Source: Zygophlyctis sp. KS116
Taxonomy: Eukaryota > Fungi > Chytridiomycota
NCBI GenBank assembly: GCA_054661495.1
Contig: BAAFSQ010000048.1
Coordinates: 21,204-53,203, forward strand
DNA length: 32,000 nt
Direction of reading: 5' to 3'
The notes beneath the pieces were generated by a model, which ran no database searches, was not told the DNA's origin, and saw only the letters and a list, made by a program, of their open reading frames with translations. The translations under genes and the position numbers were made by a program. Position 1 is the first letter of the stretch; every line of letters begins with the position of its first letter. Below are positions 1 through 22,422 of the stretch, one piece after another.

Positions 1-23
1 GTAAGATTAATAAAATTCAATAG

Positions 24-702
24 AAAAACAGGTTACAATAATGATTCTAATTTGTCATTTCAGACATTTTCTTATCAAGAGTCTCAGTATTCTCAACCTT
101 CTCAACAGTATTCATCTTACTCTACAAATTATCCTCAAAAAGTGACTTTAGAATCAATACGGTCTGCATTCTCTTGTGATGGATTAGGAAATGAACCGCC
201 ATTACTACAGGAATTGGGAATAAATTTCCAACATATTCTTTCAAAATCTCTAGTTGTACTAAATCCCTTGAAAAAAGTTGATGGTCATTTAATGGATGAT
301 GCGGATTTAGCGGGTCCTCTGATTTTTTGTTTTTTATTTGGTGGACTATTATTATTATCAGGAAAAGCACATTTTGAATACATTTATGGTGTTGCGGTTG
401 TTGGTGTACTCTCAATTTATGGAATTTTAAATTTAATGTCTGAAAATGGTATTGATATTTATAGATCTGCTTCTGTTATGGGATATTCTCTACTTCCAGT
501 AGTTTTATTTACTTCTCTATCTACTATTATGGGATGGTCTGGTTATTTGGTACTGGGAATTTCATTATTTTCTATAATTTGGTGTACTTACTCTGCATCT
601 TTAATATTTACAACTGTATTAGCAATGGATGAAGTAAGATTGTTGGTAGCGTATCCAATTGCATTAGTGTATAGTGCTTTTGTGTTACTGGCAGTTTTCT
701 AA
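24..702 (+). CDS. YIP1: Yip1/YIPF5-family Golgi membrane protein (5' part outside window)
   Basis: Motifs EPPLLQELGINF, DADLAGPLIFC and SVMGYSLLP, plus several TM helices. Bases 1-23 (gtaag...tag) look like a 23-nt intron, and the frame is open from 25. Confidence 0.92.
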
Positions 703-1252
703 AGACACAAGGAAGATTAAGAAATATAAATTCTTCTTGATTGACTAGTGCAAGCGAATTTTCTTGCAAGATCTGAGATTTGCTTAGCGACTGAGTTTCA
801 ATATCCTTCACTTCTAAAAGTTCTGATGGGATCGTAAATTCTCCTTGAGATACCTAGAGATTAATAACAAAACATTTACTATTTTAGGATATCCCTTTCT
901 ACATGCAACTGCAAGAGGCCTAATATAAGATGTGAATGAATTCATACGTTGATCCATATACAGGACGTTTGCAGTTTACATTTGCTTTGTCCCATAGTTT
1001 CATATAAACCTAAAAACATCAATCTCTTGAAACGATTACTTTGTCTAGATCTCCCGATTCACAAGCTTCTAATAGCTGTTGATCATTAACAGTTAAAGGT
1101 TTCTTAGTTGGAATAATTTCAGGAATTCCCGAATCATTGGCTAATGGATTTGATTGAACTGGACTCAATGAAAATTTCCCCTTTTGAAATCTTGAATTGA
1201 CAGAACTGGAATTTTTAACCAATGGCCTTGATTTGATCTGCTTTGAAGTCAT
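608..1252 (-). CDS. Small ankyrin-repeat protein, 3' end uncertain or possibly chimeric
   Basis: Spliced reading (introns 1010-1039, 920-947) gives LLEACESGDLDKV...ANVNCKRPVYGSTPLAVACRKGYPKI. It ends at 814 if unspliced. If 854-879 is an intron it runs to 608 and overlaps YIP1. Confidence 0.6.
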
Positions 1253-1280
1253 AAAAAGCAATGACGTAACAAAATCTATA

Positions 1281-1864
1281 TTATACTCACATCATGTAAT
1301 GCTACACACGTGACAGCTTTTTGATGTCCATTATAATGTCTAATAGTCTCACCATTTGATAAATCCCACAACCTAGCAGAATTATCAGATGATCCAGTAA
1401 CTAAATATGCAGAGTCTGCAGAAAAAGAACAATCCCAAACCCATCTTTGATGTCCAGAAAGAACCTTGTCTAATTTAAATTTGTAATATAGATACTGATC
1501 TAACAGGTATATCTTCTTCAGGTATTAATTCATGAGTACATGAATTCTCTGTTAAATCCCAAATCTTTATGCTCCCCGACTGATCACCCGTGATTAATTC
1601 CCCTAATATTATCTAATCTGGACAAACCTTGATTAGGATGAATCATGACATCATTTACAGGATTCTAAAACATAAATATATTATACTTACATTCAATTGA
1701 TAATCTCTTTGAATCCCTGGCGCTCTAATATCCCATATTTTAACAGTTCCATCTTCTGATCCAGTACACAACCATCTTCCAGCCGACTGAAACCCAGCAG
1801 AAGTCACATTCCCTGTATGGCCTTCAAATGAAGTTATAGAGTTTGCAGAATTAGACTGAACGTC
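1281..1864 (-). pseudogene. LST8: LST8 (TOR complex WD40 subunit), 5'-truncated, with internal deletion and frameshift at ~1486
   Basis: FEGHTGNVT...[32 protein letters not shown] and [11 protein letters not shown] are followed directly, in a shifted frame, by [30 protein letters not shown]. Introns 1665-1690 and 1603-1627 are retained. Confidence 0.88.
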
Positions 1865-1913
1865 ACTTAACATGTAATTTATGACATAATCCACATTCTA
1901 GATCGAGTCTATA

Positions 1914-2401
1914 CTATTTACATCCCTTCTTATTACATTTTCCATCCTTTTCAAATCTAGGACAAGAAAAAACATGTAAAGAATTACATTTTGATCCTAG
2001 AGAACAGAATCCTGAATCTGCAAAATTACTACAAATTTTAGCATCAATATCATGCTTTATATGTAAAAATTTACAAACTGATCTATTACAATTGCCTTTT
2101 TCATAAAAGGTACAATTAGGAGTAATAAATGTGTTTGGAGAATGATTTAAATTACATTCTTCATGACAATCTTGTCCTAATAGGTATTTAGGACATGGAG
2201 AGATTCTATTTGGATCATGAATAAATCTACAGTTTCCTTTACATTTTCCAAATCTAAAAAATTGACAGTGTTTTTTAGATTTTTTGAGAATTAAATTGCT
2301 AGATTTTGGTTTTTTTAGACCTTTTTTTACAAGAGAATTACCAATTTTTGAGTATAAAACTCCAGATTTATCTTTTAAGAGAGTGGTGAGACAGACTGGG
2401 G
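1914..2401 (-). CDS. ZC3H3/Red5-like tandem CCCH zinc-finger region (no own start codon; absent from ORF track)
   Basis: Open frame with CQFFRFGKCKGNCRFIH, CPKYLLGQDCHEECNLNH, CTFYEKGNCNRSVCKFLH and CSNFADSGFCSLGSKCNSLH. A fifth finger, CPRFEKDGKCNKKGCK, is cut by TAG at 1914-1916. Confidence 0.8.
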
Positions 2402-2446
2402 CTTAATTTCAATTAGAATGAAAGTATAAGAAAACAATGTAACCAA

Positions 2447-3187
2447 TCAAAGACTTTTACGTGCTGCTCTTCGCTGCTTCTTAGCTTGCGTTTCTGTTTC
2501 TTTATTAGCCTGCTGCAGGTGGTCTAGAAGTTTCTGTAATATGTCAAACAGGTGGTCGACTACACTGGTCTTCTCATAGCTCCGGTTGATTGCTTGGTGG
2601 AAGTTTGTTTCCAACCTTTCCGGTACTAGTTTTAAATCATTGAACAGTTTTAATAATTCTGCGTCATAAAGTTTTATCTGGTCGACCAAGGTGTCGTAGA
2701 TTTGGGTTTCCACTTCACGACGTCGTCTCCCATCCAAATCGGACAATGACTTTAACTCGTGCTCTTTTCTTAACAATGAACTCTCCAACAGTTCTATTTT
2801 TCTCTCACACTGGGTCACTTGCTCTTTAAGTACAGGCAGCTTTTGCGCTTCAGCACGGACACTATAGAGTTCAAAATTCGATCCAAGTAGACGGGAATTA
2901 AAATAAGTGGCCCTTCCATCGGCATCCTCTATTTCCTGGAGATAATTACGAGATACAATAACTGAATCCACAAAGCCAAGTTCGTCCAACAAATTTCCAA
3001 TTTCTAAAACCTAGAAGGTAATCAAAAACCAATAATTCCTTACATTTTCAGGATTCTCTCTTTCTTCTTCTATAACTTCGTCCACAGTGTAATTTCCCTG
3101 TCCATCATGTCTCCTTTTTCTGTGTTGATAAAATGAGTTTTTGACTTTAAACTTCTCGGGACATAGCGAGCACTTGAACATTATCAT
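2447..3187 (-). CDS. C2H2 zinc finger + coiled-coil protein of unknown origin
   Basis: Exon 3187-3044 encodes MIMFKCSLCPEKFKVKNSFYQHRKRRH (C-x2-C-x12-H-x4-H). A 33-nt intron (3011-3043) joins it in frame to the heptad-rich ORF 2447-2992. The segment is GC-richer than its flanks. Confidence 0.7.
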
Positions 3188-3246
3188 TTTTTATTTGAAC
3201 AAATTAAAACGGAGCGGAGCCAAGCATCAAATGCCCTAGCCACTTG

Positions 3247-3424
3247 GACAGAAGTGACAGAATGTGACAAAAATGACAGAAGTGACAGAATGTGACAAAA
3301 ATGACAGAAGTGACAGAATGTGACAAAAATGACAAAAATGACAGAAGTGACAGAATGTGACAGAAGTGACAAAAATGACAGAAGTGACAGAATGTGACAG
3401 AATGTGACAGAATGTGACAAATGT
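3247..3424. repeat. Compound minisatellite of 19 units (GACAGAAGT / GACAGAATGT / GACAAAAAT), partly a 28-bp higher-order repeat
   Basis: Read directly: order ABC ABC ABC C AB AC AB B B plus a final variant unit. Confidence 0.97.
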
Positions 3425-3607
3425 ATTAAATGCGCTGCAATCGATCATACATTTATAAAATACTTTCCAAAACTCTTTTATTGACTACTAAAATTAAGTA
3501 CATCCACCAACACTGAATTTGACAAATTGTTAAATAATGATTGTAATTTAGAGTCTTTAATATAATAGTAGAAATTTTTATACATATCCAACCTTGCTTC
3601 GTTACTC

Positions 3608-3974
3608 CATGATTTTGCTTCAATATATAGTGGAAGAGTGACTCATCTAAAGGTTAATATGCATCCAGATGGAGGTATTGCAAGGTATGTATAACTTGAC
3701 TTATTCAAGGTTGCGAGTTTTTGGAAGTGTGCAAAAAGATTGGACAAAAGTTTCAAATGCAGATATTTTGGATCTTGCGTGTTTAGAAAATGGAGGAAGA
3801 GCTATTTCTTGTTCAAATGCTCATTATGGTCAACCTATGAATCTTCTTTCTAGAGATACTTCTAAAGGTACGCTATAAAGTTTTAAAAATGAAGGAATGT
3901 TTGATGGATGGGAGACTGCGAGAAATATTAACCGTCCAAAATCATATGAATATGGGATTAAATTCCACGACTAA
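3608..3974 (+). pseudogene. DAL2: Allantoicase internal fragment
   Basis: VTHLKVNMHPDGGIARLRVFG...LDLACLENGGRAISCSNAHYGQPMNLL...GMFDGWETARN, with introns 3685-3709 and 3868-3894. Both ends of the enzyme are missing. Confidence 0.85.
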
Positions 3975-4334
3975 AATTGGATCCAAGATTTGAATTTCTT
4001 GAGACTCGTATAAATCTTTCTTATCAACCACCAATTCTTCTTTTGACTGTATTGTATCTGGCTCTAAATCATACCCCTTTAAATTCCTTATTGGAGACTC
4101 TAATTTCCTCCCAACCATACATACTTTTAATTCAGGCACAGGAGATCTATCCCTTTCCTTTTGAATACTATTGTCTTCTCTAGTTTTTTTAGCAATTGTA
4201 TTTCTTTTAATTTTGTAAATGAATTCATTGACTGATACTTTTTCTTTTCCTTTTAGACTAGAGACTTTAGGAACCTTGATCTTGTTAATTTTAGGAGCTT
4301 CTTCCTCTTCTAGCAATTTTTTAAATTTAAAAAA
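3942..4334 (-). other. Orphan open frame (charged, K/E-rich), probable fragment of another gene
   Basis: About 130 open codons in AT-rich DNA, no ATG at its 5' end, abutting the kexin start. Confidence 0.4.
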
Positions 4335-4336
4335 TT

Positions 4337-6475
4337 ATGAGAGATTACCATAATTTAGTTTATTATGCTATACAAGCAAAGAATCATAATATTCATGAGG
4401 TGTCAAGTGAATATGGACTAGAGTTTATGCATAGAATTGGAGAATTGGATGATTATTATTTAGTTTCTGCTCCAAAATCTGGTTTTAATTCTTTAAAGAG
4501 GAGAAGTTTATTATTGGATGATAGAGTTTTATGGATGGAAGAACAAATTCCTCAAAAGAGATTATTTAAAAGAGTTGGTAAACAGACTATACAAAGCTCT
4601 ATACTAAATAGAGAAATTCCCGGACCAGAGACAATAATTGAAAAATTGGGAATAAAGGATCCTGGGTTTCCAAATCAGTTTCATTTATATAATAGAGATG
4701 AAAAAGGTCATGATTTGAATCTGACGGGAGTTTGGTTTCAAGGAATTACAGGGAAAAATGTTACTATAACGCTCTTGGATGATGGTGTAGACTATGAACA
4801 TCCAGATATTAAAGATAATTTCTTTGCTCAAGGTTCTTGGGATTTTAATTTACATACTAATCTTCCAAAACCTCTATTATGGGATGATTATCATGGAACT
4901 AGGTGTGCTGGAGAAGTTTCAGCAGTAAAGAATGATATTTGTGGGATTGGGATTGCTTATGAGTCAAAAGTTGGGGGTATTAGAATTCTATCAGGGTCTT
5001 TAACAATTGCAGATGAAGCGGCTGCAATTACGTACATGTATCATAAGAATCATATCTTTTCGTGTTCATGGGGTCCTAGGGATGATGGTGCGACAATGGA
5101 TAAACCTCCTAAATTAGCAGCAGAAGCATTTAAAAAAGGAATTAGTTCTGGTAGAGATGGGCTTGGAACTTTATATGTTTTTGCTGCTGGAAATGGTGGA
5201 ATGCAGGGTGATAATTGGTAGCAATTTCAATTTTTTTTTTAATTTTTTTTAGTAATTTTGATGGTTATACAAATAGTATTTATACAATAACAATTGGAGC
5301 TATAGAAAAAGATAATAGTCATCCTAGTTATTCTGAACAATGTTCTGCTACATTGTCTGTAACTTATAGTGGTCATGCTGGAAGTGGAATGTCTGGGATT
5401 GTAAATTAATTTTTATTTTACTTAATAGTATACAACAGATGTACATGGTAAATGTACTAGTGCCCATGGAGGAACGTCTGCTGCGGCTCCTATGGCTAGT
5501 GGAGTTTTGGCGCTTGTTTTATCTATAAGGTATCTATAAATCTTTTAAAAAAAGACCTGATCTTACATGGAGAGACGCACAAGCATTGATTGTTCAAACA
5601 TCTGTACCAGTTAATGTGGATGATCCAGACTGGCAGACAGTTGGTAAAGGAAGGAAATTTAATCATAAATATGGCTACGGAAAATTGGATGGATATAGAA
5701 TTGTAGAAGCTGCAAAAACATTTCAAAGCTTAAAAATGCACACATCCTTATCTTCAACATCTATTCTAGTAGAAAAAGTAATACCTGAAGATTTATTTGG
5801 ACTAAACAGTACATTTGAGGTTACTGCATCTGATCTTGAAAAATATGATTTGAAAACACTGGAACATGTAACCGTGTCTCTTAATGCCAAACATGCTCGA
5901 CGTGGAGACATTAGTTTAACTCTTATATCTCCTAATGGATATAAATCAGAACTTTTAACAGTAAGATCCATGGATATGAGCACAGGTGGTTTTGAAGACT
6001 GGACTACAATGTCTGTCAAGCATTGGTACTTTTATATTTTAATATTAGGGATGAAAATCCATTAGGAATCTGGACACTTAACCTCAAAGATTCCCAATCA
6101 AACTCAAACACTGGAAAATGGAATCATTGGAATATTACTTTTTGGGGAGGAAGTAGTCGTCCAAACGTCATTTTAAATCCTCATAACAGGTCTGCAGTTA
6201 ATATTATAAAGAATTCAACCAGTAACTCCTCAACTGTACCCGTCCAACCAGGAATTATTATCGAAACATCCTATTTTAGCATTATATTTGGATTTTTTTG
6301 TCTTGTTATGGTTGTTTTTGGAATTGGATCTGCAACAACTTTTTGGAAGAGAATCACTAGAAACAAGAATAGATCTAATATAGCTGATGCTGACAGATAT
6401 ATTCCTATAGAAGATGAATTAGACGATGCATTTTTAGAAGCTCAGTTGAGGGAAGTATTGGATGAAGAGTTGTAA
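4337..6475 (+). CDS. KEX2: Kexin-type proprotein convertase (S8B) with P-domain and C-terminal TM
   Basis: Catalytic motifs DDG, HGTRCAGE, GNGG and GTSAA; KRLFKR propeptide site. Introns 5218-5252, 5401-5428, 5530-5554 and 6026-6048. Confidence 0.95.
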
Positions 6476-12704: not shown

Positions 12705-15212
12705 CTAATCATAATATTTTATATATCGAAGAGCTTCATTTCCACTGAGTAAATATCCAGGCTTAAACATTAAATCTAAAACTAATAGATTATTTGAATC
12801 ATCAAATGCGCCTTCATGCTCACATTCATCAGAATCGGACAATATTTTTGGGGGCGATTGTGAATCTAAATTCATCGAAGGTGTTGTAATGATAATATTT
12901 GATTTGTCTGCTGAAATCCATGCCATTTTTCTATTGCGTATTAATTCACATGGTCCAACGCCTAATCTATCACAGATAGTTTTGAAAAGCAATGCCCTAT
13001 GATAAAAAGAACCAATTTTTAATGATCCTAACTTTAATATTGCACTTTTTTCTTCGCTCTTTAGCTCAGATATATGCGCCGTGACTTCTTTATCAAAAGA
13101 ATCGACTGATTTAATCCCACCCATAGTAGCTATGACAATTTCTGCGATCGACTGAAATTGCTCAAAAGCAGTTTTGCTTGGAATTTGTTCACTTAACTTG
13201 GATATTAATGAACAAAGATTTGTGTCCAGATTGAAATCAACTAAAAAAAATGTTCTCCCAAGTTTGGACATTAATTCTTCTCTCCTAGGTAGCCTATGTA
13301 TCGAGTGATAATAGTCTCCGGCGTAACCAATATCTAAAAATCCATCTTCAATTTTGTTGCGATCGGACAACCTATTTGTAAGCCAAAATTTGGAAGTAGG
13401 ATCTAGATATGAGAATAATTTAAAATCATACTCTGCTCGATGATTTTGAATAATGTAGTTTTCGCAATATGTGATACCTTTTTAGTCGAATCATTCACAG
13501 CCGATAGCAAATTATCGACCACATTATACTGAAAGGACAATTTACAAATAAAATCAGATTTACATGCATTTCCCAAAGCTAATATGCTATTTCTGGATAA
13601 ATCTTCAAGTGGGGAGATAACATTTGCGACGAGCTTCTCAATAATTTTGCTATTTGATTTTGATAAAATAAACCTAGCTTCTTCATCATGCAAACCAATT
13701 GATAAAGCTAAAGTTGCGGAAGACGCTATAAGTGGTGACTTTTCAATGACATTGATAAGTGATGATATCAAACCAGCCCTAATAAATTCACTCCTTATAT
13801 GAGCTTTTACATTAAAAAATAGAGTATTTACCGTCTTTTAAAAGTCTAAAAATGCATTCGGCAGCGTTTCTAGACGTTTCATGATCGTCAGACTGTACAT
13901 GATTCAGTAGAGAAGTATATAAATCTGGGATTTCTCTCGGCTTCGATTTTGCTTATTCTTTAGAAATAAAAGTTCTCTTACCTTTAATTACGACAGCATT
14001 AACCAATAGCAGTATCGCTCTTTTGACTAATAAATGATCTGAGCGTAATAGTTTCCCCATAATTTCTTGATTTACAGGTTTTGATAATTCCACTGCAATA
14101 AGTTCTTCTTCTACCATATAACAAAGAATACTTATAGCTCGACTGGATATATTGCTATCACTTGATCCCAGCAACAAAATGATCTTTTGAACTATTTCAG
14201 ACTCTATAAATAACAATCTATTTTCCTCTATAAAGTTAATTATATCCATTACTTTTTTCACTTGCAACTTGTATCATCTGCAAAACATCAATCCTTAATT
14301 CTTCTTTACTAAAATTATCAATAATTGCATCTGTTGGGAAATGATAAGGAAATTCATTCAACATTTCATGATTTTTCAATATTTTTGCCAAAGTCTGAAT
14401 AGTCAAATGTAAAATAGAATCATTTGTACATGTACCAAACACTTGAATAACCATTGACAAAAACCCAAGCTTTTTTAACTCTAATATGGTTTGATCATCC
14501 TGTACGAGTTTCAGTATACAGTTTAAAGCAACTATACAAATTTCCTCGTAATCAGAGTTGATTAAACTAATAATCTTATTTATCCCTTGTATTTTCCTGA
14601 ACTCTATTTTATTCATACAATCTGTGAATAATTGATCTAGCGCTCGTAATGAATTTAATAAAACATCTGGATCCTTCTGATCCAAACAATTAGTGAGTGC
14701 ATTTATTCCTCCATATTTCTTAATTTCAAATTGGTTTATCGCTTATGTTATAATCTATTAATCTTACAATCTTTTGCAATATTTCCAAGTCCGAAAGCAG
14801 CATCATCTTGCATTTCTATTACATTTGATTTCGCACCATGAATCAGCGTCTTTATTAAATCAGGTCTTTGTAATTCTGAATGACAGAGGCCATCAGTGAC
14901 TGATGACAATAGAGAAATACAAAGAGTTTTCAAATGATCATCAAATGTCCGATTATAAAGATCTATAATGGAAGTTATAGATTTTGAATCTAAAAACAAC
15001 TGTTTTGAATGCTGATTTTTCTCTGTAAATATCATTAATTCTTGTAGCGCTTGAACTTGAAGATCATACTCTGGACAGTTTGCTAGAAACAAGAGCGACT
15101 GGACTGATGACACTTGAAGCACCTGCTTGGTTTCAAGCTTCAAGTCAGACAGAGGTTCTGTTTTGGTGAGAGTCTTTTGACCACAGACGGTGGGTGTGAT
15201 GGTTTCGGCCAT
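12705..15212 (-). CDS. Divergent tandem paralogue of ARMC3
   Basis: ARM repeats (QDDAAFGLGNIAKD) plus GFLDIG...GSFYHRALLFKTICDRLGV and LDLMFKPG. It shares intron positions with the neighbouring copy. Confidence 0.82.
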
Positions 15213-18515: not shown

Positions 18516-18797
18516 TTTCTCATTCTTATTCTAGGATTTGAGATTATAAATAAACTGAACCAATGAGCTCCAAATCCAATAGTGTCTAGGTTCTGTATTA
18601 GAGTCAAAGAGTAATTGAGAATGAATTTTGTTAGATTCCTGACCAACGTTTTTGGTTTTGGATGGGGTTTGATGAGTTTCTGTTTGGAAATTTCATGTCC
18701 TGGATGCAATTGATGCTTATTCCTAAAGTAAAGTAGTGCGAATCCAATGTCCGAAAACAACTCAAGCGAAGTTTATTTTTTTATTCAAGATCGGCTG

Positions 18798-19431
18798 CTA
18801 GAAAATGAAAACACTAGCCAAAGAGAGTAAAATCGATAAATAAGGAGATACAGACTTTGCACTCCCAGTATTTAGTTTGCCTGCTGTTTGGCACTGATCT
18901 TTTATAGATCTGGTAAACTCCGTTTTGAAGTCGCTTGTGCAAACAGCGATTTTATTTGAGCTTTAAGATTAGTATGAAACTTTGATTTACCAATCAGAAT
19001 ATCCAGAATAGTGGGAGCAGGCACAATCCAATGAAGGATTGTTAATGCATGGTTTTCGAAGAAATTCGTCGTTGCAAGTATAAAGTTCTTTTTGACAAGG
19101 TAAGAGGTCGCATAAAGATGAATATATTGCTTTGTTTCCATCATAGATTGGTTTCTTGGCAGCATCATCACATGACGTAACTTTGGCCACACTTGAATCA
19201 ATAAATCATGGTAACTTACCATTCATCCATAATCTTCAAATGTGAACAAGAACATTCTTGTCTATTGATATCATCGAAAATCGTCGATTCAGTAGTATTT
19301 CGGGAATTGCAACTTTGGCCAAAAGATTCTTCTAACGCATTCTGACAAGCAGTAAGGCCTTGAAGGCATGCTGGCGACTGAGCAATTGTCTGAGATAGAA
19401 GCATGGCTGGAATGATGAGAATGGCAAACAA
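18798..19431 (-). CDS. Cys-rich secreted/putative GPI-anchored protein, copy 1 (TTG where copy 2 has ATG; possible pseudogene)
   Basis: Signal-like N-terminus, two Cys modules, two introns that each split a Cys codon, hydrophobic C-terminal tail SPYLSILLSLASVFIF. Confidence 0.75.
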
Positions 19432-19439
19432 TATATCTT

Positions 19440-19556
19440 TGTTGATATAAAGTGGTTAAAGAGTTATAATTTATTTTCTAACAATGAATCTTCCAAAACA
19501 TCATTCAGTTGACGTTTTACGAGTGACGTAGCTCTGTTGCATTTCACGCTTCAACA
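19440..19556 (-). repeat. Putative 3' LTR, 117 bp
   Basis: Bounded by the inverted termini TGTTGA (19440) and TCAACA (19551-19556). On the minus strand it is preceded by purine-rich AGATGAGAG (degenerate PPT) right after the RNase H end. Confidence 0.75.
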
Positions 19557-20410
19557 CTCTCATCTGAAATCGGCACTCCTAAGTTCAGTTTATCCTTGAA
19601 TGACTGAAACAATGGTTCATTTAAAGGTTTCGTGAATGCATCTGCCACTTGATCTTTTGATTGAATGTGAGTGACATTGATCACACCCATTTTCACGTGG
19701 TCTCTTATAAAATGATAATGTACATTCACTTGTTTGATCATTGACTTGTATACTGGTTTTTAGCAATTTGAATTGCTGCCTGGTTATCATCATATACTTC
19801 AATTGGTGTTTCAACTTCTAAATTTAACTCCATCAATATTGCCCTGACAAATAGTACATCTGATACCCCTTAACGCAACATATTCTGACTCTGCTGAGCT
19901 CTTAGCTTTAATTGATTGCTTTAGTGACTTCCAACAAACAAGATTCCCATTCACATAGACTACCCATCAAAGAGTTTATTTCTCTCCTTGGGGTGCATAT
20001 GATGCATCTACAAACACTTCTAGAGTAAATTTTCCATTTCCTGATTTCTTATACAGCAATCCTTCAGTCAAATATTGTAGAATTCTCTTTACTGCAGTAA
20101 CCTCTGTACTCTTCGGATTTACTTGATAGCGTGACGCATCAGAGACAGCAAAAGAAAGATCTGGTCTAGTGCAATTTACAAGATGAAAAAGACTTCCAAT
20201 TATTGATCTATACTTAGTTGCATCTTCTACTTTCCCATCAACTCCTAAGACTACTTGAGTGTCAAAAGGTGTAGACTTCCGTGCCAAATCTCTTTACAAT
20301 TTCATCACTAGCCTTAGCTTGTGGATATCATATTCTGCGTTCTCTGTATTTTCCACTGCAAAAATTGATTTGAGGTCAAATCTCCCAGGTTCTTTCCAGG
20401 AAATACTCAA
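19440..20410 (-). mobile_element. Degenerate, 5'-truncated Ty1/copia LTR retrotransposon (RT C-terminus, RNase H, 3' LTR)
   Basis: KNLGDL...DEIVKRFG, YRSIIGSL...TRPDLSFAV, DASYA, SSAESEYVA, DNQAAI and HFIRDHV...QVADAFTKPL, with frameshifts and stops. Confidence 0.93.
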
Positions 20411-20819
20411 GTGGGAAAAGTCAAGACAATCGCAGAAGTTGTGAAACAATTTCCAAAAATGATCGAACAGTCTTCACAGAAGGATTTAGATTTGAAAAGG
20501 TAAATTTTCAGAGTTGCTTGTGGAACTCTATTCCCCAATGACTGTAGTTAGCAAGCGCATCGTTTAGTATTGGATATGTATCCTTTGTGAGGTCGCTCCG
20601 GAGTGGATGGAAAGAGCAACTTTGATTATACTATCAAAAGATGAATTTAAACAAAATATCCTTCACATTTACTAAATCAATAAAACGAAGAAGTATTCAA
20701 AAGCTTATGATTTTTTGAAATATAAATTCTAACTTGCAAAATAAGACAGCATTTTATTAAATCAGCATTTATATGACGTTTGTTAAAATCGAGGAAACTT
20801 CCATTCGTTAATTAAAATT

Positions 20820-21326
20820 TTAAACAAATGCCACCTGGACTCGAGTATTCTGATTAAAGAACTTTCCCGACCAAACAAGATATGCGCCAACGGCTAATAA
20901 TATTACTCCTACCACAAGTGAAAGTCCGCCTATAATATAAAAGGATAGTATTGGTGTGATTGAGTACAAATTAACAATATAACCTAGAGGAAGTAGTAGT
21001 ACTCCCATGACACAAGAAGAAATAGTGCATCCGATAAAGATTGCTCTTCTTACTGTGTTTTCATTAGAAATCTGGTTTATTTCACCGTCAACTGGTTCAG
21101 GAGAAACCGTTGAGGTCTTGATGATAGGGGGCCCAGTCTTCATCTTATGGCTTTGTAAGTAAGTTTTGAGTTTTGCATACTCATCCATGGTGAATCCATA
21201 CGCTTCTGCCTCATTATACTTCATTTGAGCAATGTCTTCTGTTATCAGTCCTTTTGATGACATGGCATAAAGTTTGGGTTGATTCAATTTAACAGCCAGC
21301 GTTTCAATACTTTCATAGCGGTCCAT
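20820..21326 (-). CDS. Hypothetical intronless protein with two C-terminal TM helices
   Basis: 168-aa ATG-initiated ORF with two hydrophobic segments; no family recognised. Confidence 0.65.
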   Translation of the reverse strand: MDRYESIETLAVKLNQPKLYAMSSKGLITEDIAQMKYNEAEAYGFTMDEYAKLKTYLQSHKMKTGPPIIKTSTVSPEPVDGEINQISNENTVRRAIFIGCTISSCVMGVLLLPLGYIVNLYSITPILSFYIIGGLSLVVGVILLAVGAYLVWSGKFFNQNTRVQVAFV

Positions 21327-21504
21327 TTTTGAGTAGGAAATTTATTAATATAATGATTGACAAATGCGTCAGCCCTGCGTGGATGCGAATGGCAAAGTCA
21401 TTTTCTTTGATTAGAAGAACTGATTTCTGATCTTGAAGATCTGATTTGTTTTTTATGTATTTCAATGTCCGAAAACAACTAAAGCGTTTATGAATACATA
21501 TGTG

Positions 21505-22180
21505 CTAGAAAATGAAAACTGTAGCCAAAGAAAGTAAAATCGATAAAAAAGGAGATACAGACTTTGAGCCTCCAGGAACAGGTTTACCGGCTTTTTTGCA
21601 TTCAGATTTCATAGAATCAGTTGAATTTTTGAGCAAAGTTTTACTGCAAGTTGTAATTTTGTTTACGCTAATAGATCAGCATTAAAATGTGATTTACCAG
21701 CCAGAAAACGCAGTATATCGGGGACATATACAATCAAATGAGCCACTAAAGGATGAGTTTTGTCCAAACGTCGGCTTTATATTGCATGGTTTGTAAAGAG
21801 TGTTATCTAAACAAGTGAGATGTTCTTTTTGACAAGGTAAACTGTCGCATACAGCTACTTCTAAATCGATTAATATATTAGAAATCTGTTTTGAGACAGC
21901 ATCATCGCATGCTGTAACTTTGGCAAGACTTGAGTCAATCAATCATGATAATTTACCAATCTTTGTATGTTTTTGCAGCTGGGCAGCTACATTCTTGTTG
22001 TTGAATTACATCCAAAATTGATGATCCAGATGTAACAGGTGTAGCTCGTAAAGAGCCGCACGTTTGATTTAGAGATAACGAATATGCATTCAGACAAGCA
22101 GTACGTCCTTGATTGCATTGATCTGATTGAGCAATTGTCTGATAAAGAAGCATGGCTGGAATGATGAGGATGGCAAACAT
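21505..22180 (-). CDS. Cys-rich secreted/putative GPI-anchored protein, copy 2
   Basis: MFAILIIPAMLLYQTIAQ; same exon structure and tail as copy 1. Confidence 0.82.
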
Positions 22181-22422
22181 AATAGCTAATTTGAAAGGGG
22201 GGATTAATCAATTTATTTTCCGAAATTACATCTTTCAATAAATTACATCACTTATCGTGACCATCAACTTAAATGTTTCCATCCAAGAGATCATATTGCA
22301 CTGCATCATGCAGATGACACTCTACGTCACTAATCCATGTCCGAATTCAACTAAATCATAAAAGATTGAGATTTCCAGGAAAAGTTTCCAAATATCTTTT
22401 ATTACAAATCAGACTTGGCAAG

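Follow-up and report, generated by a model that had tools for sequence, protein, structure and literature searches.

A fixed patchwork of copied gene fragments around an orphan gene in Zygophlyctis sp. KS116, consistent with templated repair of a chromosome break

Insertion of DNA copied from several donors at a chromosome break has been seen mostly in cancer cells and at breaks made by engineering, and capture by Helitrons and Pack-MULEs typically gives rows of fragments, introns included, of several genes. Multi-donor templated insertions at breaks have been described (10.1101/2022.09.30.509517; PMC8421209). A locus of Zygophlyctis sp. KS116 is compared here with both kinds of system. The window analysed is a stretch of 32,000 nucleotides (contig BAAFSQ010000048.1, C48:21204-53203) from an assembly of 12.7 Mb in 1175 contigs, and the locus is the interval at 703-4336 of this window, between a Yip1-like gene and a gene for a kexin-type protease. 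The interval was interpreted, with a probability of roughly 0.6, as a fixed patchwork of genomic pieces from at least nine other loci, set between two working host genes, with an orphan gene (the cassette, composed of a C2H2 exon and a coiled-coil exon) at its centre, and as the outcome of break repair by templated insertion.

As in the described templated-insertion chains, stretches of 72-620 bp from several unlinked and intact donors are joined through microhomology or short filler and in mixed orientation. Unlike those chains, the locus is a fixed part of the germ line in an organism that is fungus-like and free-living, it is old (3-19% divergence), it comprises at least ten pieces and it includes one intact gene without a detectable donor. 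With Helitron and Pack-MULE capture it has in common an exon-plus-intron mosaic of unrelated host genes, the potential for a chimeric transcript and a genome in which Helitrons occur, whereas termini, a target duplication, a second copy and similarity to a resident Helitron are absent here.

The patchwork was resolved into at least ten pieces that are 81-97% identical to at least nine other contigs, with eleven mapped matches on C14, C132, C4, C270, C584, C153, C26, C151 and C215 (Table 1). Each piece has an intact donor elsewhere, the exceptions being the cassette and the fillers at 1866-1915 and 2385-2446. The Pfam names obtained for the donors were WD40, Trypsin_2, Allantoicase and zf-CCCH. 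Donor open frames (309 codons on C4, 385 and 373 on C14, 322 on C151 and 236 on C26) run past the edges of the pieces, whereas the window pieces stop at those edges. Introns and intergenic DNA are kept within the pieces, indicating that they were copied at the level of DNA. Neighbouring pieces overlap by 2-5 bp at 866/865, 3496/3494 and 3613/3609, fillers of 6, 6 and 50 bp are found at other junctions, and the 240 bp that lie between the two C132 pieces in the donor are absent from the window. From the cassette downstream all pieces lie on the minus strand, and upstream of it their orientation alternates. No telomere repeats were found at the patchwork junctions, the sole TTAGGG/CCCTAA in positions 1-6000 being at 1601, inside a C132 piece.

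Table 1. Coordinates of the patchwork, its pieces and the decayed cassette copies, in window positions (percentages are nucleotide identity to the named contig unless stated otherwise)
Feature	Position	Strand	Description
Whole patchwork	703-4336	.	from the stop of the Yip1-like gene (700-702, +) to the ATG of the kexin-type protease gene (4337, +)
C14 piece 1	726-866	-	96%; multi-exon gene, exon and part of an intron
C132 piece 1	865-1481	-	96%; 3' part of a WD40 gene, intergenic stretch, start of the next gene
C132 piece 2	1488-1865	-	97%; WD40 exons with a retained 26-nt intron
Filler	1866-1915	.	50 bp, no donor; completes the TAG of the CCCH frame
CCCH fragment	1916-2384	-	truncated copy of the C4 gene, 97% nucleotide and 95% amino acid identity; four complete fingers, a fifth without its His; no start codon
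Unattributed stretch	2385-2446	-	downstream of the cassette stop; contains most of the candidate intron 2402-2460
Cassette exon 2	2447-3010	-	187-codon open frame, TGA at 2449-2447; all-helical, coiled-coil-like; 41.5% GC, GC3 0.41
Cassette intron	3011-3043	-	33 nt, GTAAGG...CTAG; the C584 copy retains the exon 1/intron boundary
Cassette exon 1	3044-3187	-	48 codons from the first ATG; one C2H2-type finger, C-x2-C-x12-H-x5-H, then a basic patch
Cassette copy on C270	2738-2947		84%; decayed, part of exon 2
Cassette copy on C584	3030-3231		81%; decayed, exon 1 and leader
Cassette copy on C153	3113-3186		84%; decayed, part of exon 1
TGACA-core tandem array	3247-3424	-	about 18 units repeating every 9-10 nt, with higher-order periods of 28 and 37; 59 bp upstream of the cassette ATG
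C26 piece	3425-3496	+	72 bp, 93%; 5' end of a trypsin-like (HtrA-type) peptidase gene
C151 piece	3494-3613	-	120 bp, 97%; exon of an unnamed gene
C215 piece	3609-3955	+	347 bp, 95%; allantoicase gene with a retained 25-nt intron
C14 piece 2	3962-4311	-	87%, with indels; same C14 gene, collinear with 726-866

Under repair by templated insertion, a chromosome break, or several successive breaks, would have occurred between the Yip1-like and kexin genes and would have been mended by copying short stretches of other loci through template switching, either by break-induced replication that microhomology mediates (MMBIR) or by synthesis-dependent end joining. The stitching would have set the cassette in frame with the CCCH fragment as a by-product, and the cassette itself may have been resident at the site or captured.

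The contiguity of the locus was assessed in the Logan contigs of three DNA runs, each from a different study (one labelled with the organism and two freshwater metagenomes), in which the window-specific versions were recovered with 0 differences. An earlier reading of this DNA from its letters and open frames (hereafter the sequence-only reading) had proposed that the junction between the cassette and the CCCH block be looked for in reads, and a contig starting at 2355 indeed crosses 2384/2385 into the cassette in all three DNA runs. The two CCCH copies do not differ over the 35 bp at 2350-2384, a length above k-1, so that the k-mer contigs prove that a CCCH copy abuts the cassette and not which of the two. 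That the pieces are not truly adjacent, and that the locus is a chimera of the assembly or of whole-genome amplification, is barely credible: the assembly is fragmented and the k-mer contigs break at every piece edge, but a divergence of 3-19% from the donors marks the pieces as separate old copies, and therefore not as mis-joined reads or an amplification chimera, and the same sequence across 2384/2385 was returned by all three studies. A k-mer joint of 866 to 3962 was considered as an empty allele and rejected, as it derives from the diverged C14 gene instead. An empty site was also sought in seven metagenome contigs with relatives of the Yip1-like gene (55-72% identical), none of which (0/7) displayed downstream synteny.

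In the sequence-only reading the CCCH block was a host gene of which the N-terminus had been replaced by the cassette, with the break near a TTAA at 2375-2378. Comparison with C4 gave a different picture on all three points. The block is a truncated 97% copy of the C4 gene and one of at least ten copied fragments; the host gene itself is intact on C4, where one uninterrupted exon encodes all 299 aa from its own N-terminus to its own C-terminus; and the break, both in composition and in homology, is at 2384/2385. The TTAA thus falls inside sequence shared with C4 and is no mark of a target site. The homology ends mid-exon of the C4 parent at 2384/2385 and again at 1916, the window copy being without the first ~85 residues of the parent, which runs on for a further 60 residues (an acidic tail) beyond the end of the copy. 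On the minus strand, 2399-1914 encodes 161 codons of tandem CCCH fingers followed by a TAG, in a frame that has no Met and is open only from 2402; the Pfam scan placed zf-CCCH in the block at 1916-2384, and the four complete fingers counted in the sequence-only reading are there, the fifth lacking its final His. The first base of the stop (TAG, 1916-1914) is the last C4-derived base and the other two are supplied by the 50-bp filler.

The C4 gene is presumably of the ZC3H3 or fission-yeast Red5 type, a label for which the Pfam test covered zf-CCCH only. Like tandem CCCH proteins of this type, and like its C4 parent, the window piece has tandem C-x8-C-x5-C-x3-H fingers and a basic lead-in; it differs from them by the missing N-terminal part, last His and acidic tail noted above. 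An own start, the full set of fingers and the C-terminal tail, which were looked for as signs of a functional ZC3H3-like gene, were not found together or singly in the window copy. Between the window and C4 copies 15 sites differ, 4 synonymous and 11 non-synonymous, corresponding to a ratio of non-synonymous to synonymous change per site (pN/pS) of 0.66, and the copy looks, on these small numbers, like one under relaxed constraint. Judged by these comparisons, the CCCH block is a dead-end fragment and not a resident host gene, the true ZC3H3-like gene being the whole one on C4.

The cassette is a real, intact two-exon gene of ~235 aa, encoding one C2H2 finger and a conserved helical domain. 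An in-frame TAA lies 6 nt upstream of the first ATG at 3187, and 3010-2462 (-) is open for 183 codons. Readable host introns are 25-36 nt long, with loose GTA.. donors and with both TAG and AAG acceptors. The guanine-cytosine (GC) content of the window is 33.8% (AT-rich; genome ~34%). Recomputation of the 60-mers sampled in the sequence-only reading gave 48.3% and 46.7% GC in exon 2 and 23.3% in the CCCH block, as it had stated, and over the whole exon the values were 41.6% for exon 2 (to 2461) and 28.1% for the CCCH block. When the 550-bp tiles of the window are ranked by GC, exon 2 falls in the top 0.5%, a level matched elsewhere only near 15051. Exon 2 has a GC content at third codon positions (GC3) of 0.41 and exon 1 one of 0.375, as against 0.14-0.32 for 14 other long frames of the window; two transposon frames, at 0.29 and 0.32, are below both cassette exons.

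Protein searches with the spliced cassette model were carried out exon by exon. The Pfam scan returned a sub-threshold C2H2 finger in exon 1 and no family above cut-off for the cassette protein; the Atlas gave no usable match, a word search of public proteins gave no homologue, and a profile search of the PDB gave only generic coiled coils or chance matches. The AlphaFold model was all-helical with a predicted local distance difference test (pLDDT) score of 59, a confidence too low for a search by fold. IMG/VR yielded no relative of the cassette domain, and a viral origin, considered for the cassette, was set aside for want of support from that search. An exhaustive HMMER search of 1.84 billion representative proteins yielded four weak matches (E 4e-7 to 1e-4), which have conserved blocks in common with exon 2 across ~130-150 residues at 26-31% identity. 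All four (P0001-P0004) come from metagenome or other public assemblies, belong to clusters of 1-2 members and are long coiled-coil proteins of uncultured freshwater eukaryotes. They differ from the cassette in being much longer and in having no C2H2 exon in their available parts; for them no Pfam match above cut-off was obtained, and searches of the PDB and the Atlas returned only generic coiled-coil or chance similarity. There is no close relative of the cassette in public proteins, though the relatives of the organism are well sampled. At 2631-2684, two metagenome runs other than the organism's own suggest a cassette variant without 54 bp (in frame, 18 codons), one side of which rests on 29 letters and which may be an artefact or belong to another organism.

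The TGACA-core array upstream of the cassette is unique in the genome, no second copy of 3247-3424 being found in a high-stringency search, and remnants of the array are also present upstream of the cassette copies on C584 and C153. Short TGACA-type arrays occur in intergenic DNA beside host genes, one of them ~350 bp upstream of a beta-tubulin ATG. Because similar short arrays adjoin ordinary host genes, the array is probably the promoter or a regulatory region of the cassette, and TGACA-type arrays may be a common regulatory motif of the organism. These short arrays, with a TGACA/TGTCA core and units of 9-10 nt, lie at ~1500-1525 of L049 (C121), ~1500-1540 of L050 (C345) and ~1500-1525 of L048 (C106).

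The three decayed cassette copies sit in transposon debris with retroelement relics, detected as a sub-threshold match to an aspartyl protease, and a reverse transcriptase-like motif and a hAT-like relic were noted near them by eye. In the reads of run X1 no second cassette copy was found at 90% identity or above, and the depth across 2434-3219 was that of a single contig, from which it follows that the cassette was not copied recently from a gene elsewhere. For a single 1-kb gene, three old pieces are far more than is seen for neighbouring host genes, the flanking Yip1-like and kexin genes having 0 extra copies in the genome. On these counts the cassette would either once have existed in multiple copies or have been favoured as a donor. 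A foreign GC3, three old copies and the lack of a close public relative are in keeping with a formerly repeated or mobile gene, and the view of the cassette as foreign-looking and once repeated is supported to that extent. An AT-ward decay of the copies was considered and set aside, as the counts (29 versus 18) were not significant by a rough binomial estimate. Just upstream of the ATG of the decayed copy on C584, at ~1440-1460 of L002, lies a palindromic telomere-like snippet, TTAGGGTTAACCCTAA, which is absent from the window copy.

A homologue of the cassette was found on the metagenome contig L063, in a compact same-strand block of intron-less frames, where it is followed downstream by an OTU-protease frame and a frame of 291 aa. 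The latter has an intact homologue (35% identical) in the present genome, on the 1.7-kb contig C869. This gene (L071, 501-1628, -) has two exons, an intron of 107 nt, 41% GC and a GC3 of 0.35-0.42, a composition as atypical for the genome as that of the cassette. Cys-rich motifs occur in the N-terminal part of its protein, the model of which (pLDDT 73) bears a weak resemblance to RNase T / DnaQ exonucleases. Relatives at 45-85% identity are found in chytrid-type metagenome contigs, repeatedly within ~1 kb of contig ends, the best named one (55%) being from Chytridiales sp. JEL 0842. On C584 a 131-bp relic of the C869 gene lies 340 bp from the cassette relic, with a retroelement relic between the two, and two contigs with closer C869 relatives carry no cassette homologue. 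A larger element linking the cassette and the C869 gene was therefore rejected and is kept as a lead only, not as evidence, because of the intervening retroelement relic and those two contigs.

Mobile-element origins of the whole interval were considered next to templated repair. The lack of a transposase and of convincing terminal repeats reported in the sequence-only reading holds for the whole patchwork: no transposase frame is present in 703-4336, no terminal inverted repeat (TIR) pair was found between 703-730 and 4300-4336 beyond AT-rich chance matches, and no duplicated flank (target-site duplication, TSD) was found at the outer borders. Its proposal that the cassette be counted and the ends of an element be defined led to a mixed result, with three partial copies of the cassette on the one hand, and on the other no ends, no TSD and a 703-4336 unit that is single-copy. 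A TIR element, including a piggyBac-type insertion at TTAA, was accordingly rejected, there being no TIRs, TSD or transposase and the TTAA lying within C4-derived sequence. The idea that a transposon of the kind that captures gene fragments (a Helitron, a Pack-MULE or similar) inserted between the Yip1-like and kexin genes with the whole 3.6-kb unit as its cargo is unlikely. It gains from the array of intron-containing fragments of several genes and from Helitron Rep domains at 15 places of the genome, one of them in an open frame of 1646 codons (C167:2652-7589, L068). However, the 23 and 25 unattributed bases at the ends of the patchwork are too few for termini, Helitron ends (5'-TC, 3'-CTRR and a subterminal hairpin) were not found in it, neither the unit nor any of its junctions has a second copy, and blastn of 600-4400 against the Helitron loci of the genome returned only 14-nt chance matches. 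The 1646-codon Rep/helicase frame suggests that Helitrons may be active in this genome; beside it in L068, on the opposite strand, is a 509-codon frame that was taken by eye for a transposon frame.

The exons 3187-3044, 3010-2461 and 2401-1914, which the sequence-only reading had joined into one gene, have open translations and phases that fit. Its 59-nt intron at 2402-2460 fared less evenly: it is in frame and, at about twice the length of host introns, as long as stated, but a 65-nt alternative (2460/2395, ending in CAG at 2396) is equally in frame. Between the last codons of the cassette and the CCCH frame, 8 out of 8 donor/acceptor pairs (two donors, four acceptors) are in frame, and the cassette's own TGA lies 12 nt beyond the proposed donor. 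In an estuary metatranscriptome, a contig of 151 nt and depth 2 matches 2109-2258 exactly, C4 differing from it at 4 sites; the contig does not reach the junction. The match at 2109-2258 also suggests that the organism or a near relative may occur in estuaries.

A reading in which the cassette stems from a mobile or virus-like element not described before and, by its position next to the CCCH fragment, gives rise to an expressed protein of ~393 aa (C2H2, coiled coil and four CCCH fingers), a new gene made by fragment shuffling, was judged quite improbable. The uniform success of the donor/acceptor pairs, the loose GTA.. donors and AAG acceptors of host introns, the common orientation of everything downstream of the cassette and the RNA-library contig that matches the window CCCH copy all speak for it, as do the foreign GC3 with three decayed copies and the compact block of L063, with its cassette homologue, OTU protease frame and C869 homologue. 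The stop 12 nt past the donor and a candidate intron twice the host length speak against it, together with a pN/pS of 0.66 in a copy with an incomplete fifth finger and without the 60-aa tail of the parent. The RNA contig, moreover, is from a metatranscriptome, has a depth of 2 and falls short of the junction; neither a transposase nor element ends were found; few copies of the cassette family occur in public data, where its clusters have 1-2 members; and the C869 link fails on two other contigs. Under templated repair, the predicted 393-aa fusion is probably fortuitous, a by-product of the stitching, and the path would produce at most a read-through or an occasionally spliced chimeric transcript. 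Annotation of the locus calls for caution, since gene-calling software would probably put a fusion protein of 393 aa here that may not exist. A bolder combination, that a germ-line templated-insertion chain has just built a new expressed gene of C2H2, coiled coil and four CCCH fingers, and that the cassette is what remains of an undescribed mobile or virus-like element, of low copy number in chytrid-like fungi and perhaps with the GC-rich DnaQ-fold gene of C869 and L063 as its partner, is a long shot; if true, it would be an early stage of exon shuffling without transposons or retroposition.

Several observations weigh against templated repair as formulated above. Identity is 87% for 3962-4311, as against 93-97% in most of the donor pieces and 81-84% in the copies of the cassette, and with the divergence of the pieces so unequal a single event is not shown. 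Both outermost pieces derive from one C14 gene and are collinear, so they could be parts of an older, incomplete duplicate of that gene which was disrupted at a later time. For want of a donor, the cassette does not fit a single event, and having no near-identical source in the X1 reads it is not simply another copied piece. An intact Rep/helicase frame in the genome allows for capture mediated by a transposon, at the low probability given above. The estuary contig, lastly, hints at transcription of the CCCH fragment, with carry-over of DNA as a possible source.

If repair by templated insertion is the right explanation, the locus would be a clean, datable, natural multi-donor templated insertion fixed in a small fungal genome. 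Through such patches, a gene that is intact and carries its promoter can come to lie in frame with a spare module for RNA binding, which is raw material for new genes.

At the upstream border of the downstream neighbour, the kexin frame (4337-5221) starts with pro-domain-like sequence and no visible signal peptide. The kexin ATG is separated from the patchwork pieces by 25 unattributed bases, and the first exon and promoter of the kexin gene may be displaced or lie inside the C14-derived piece; a plus-strand frame at 4219-4353, which overlaps the kexin start, has a hydrophobic stretch. Outside the patchwork the rest of the window has few extra copies in the genome, except for a repeated family at ~18.8-22.2 kb, where 18795-22192 has many partial copies, 66-94% identical, on more than 20 contigs.

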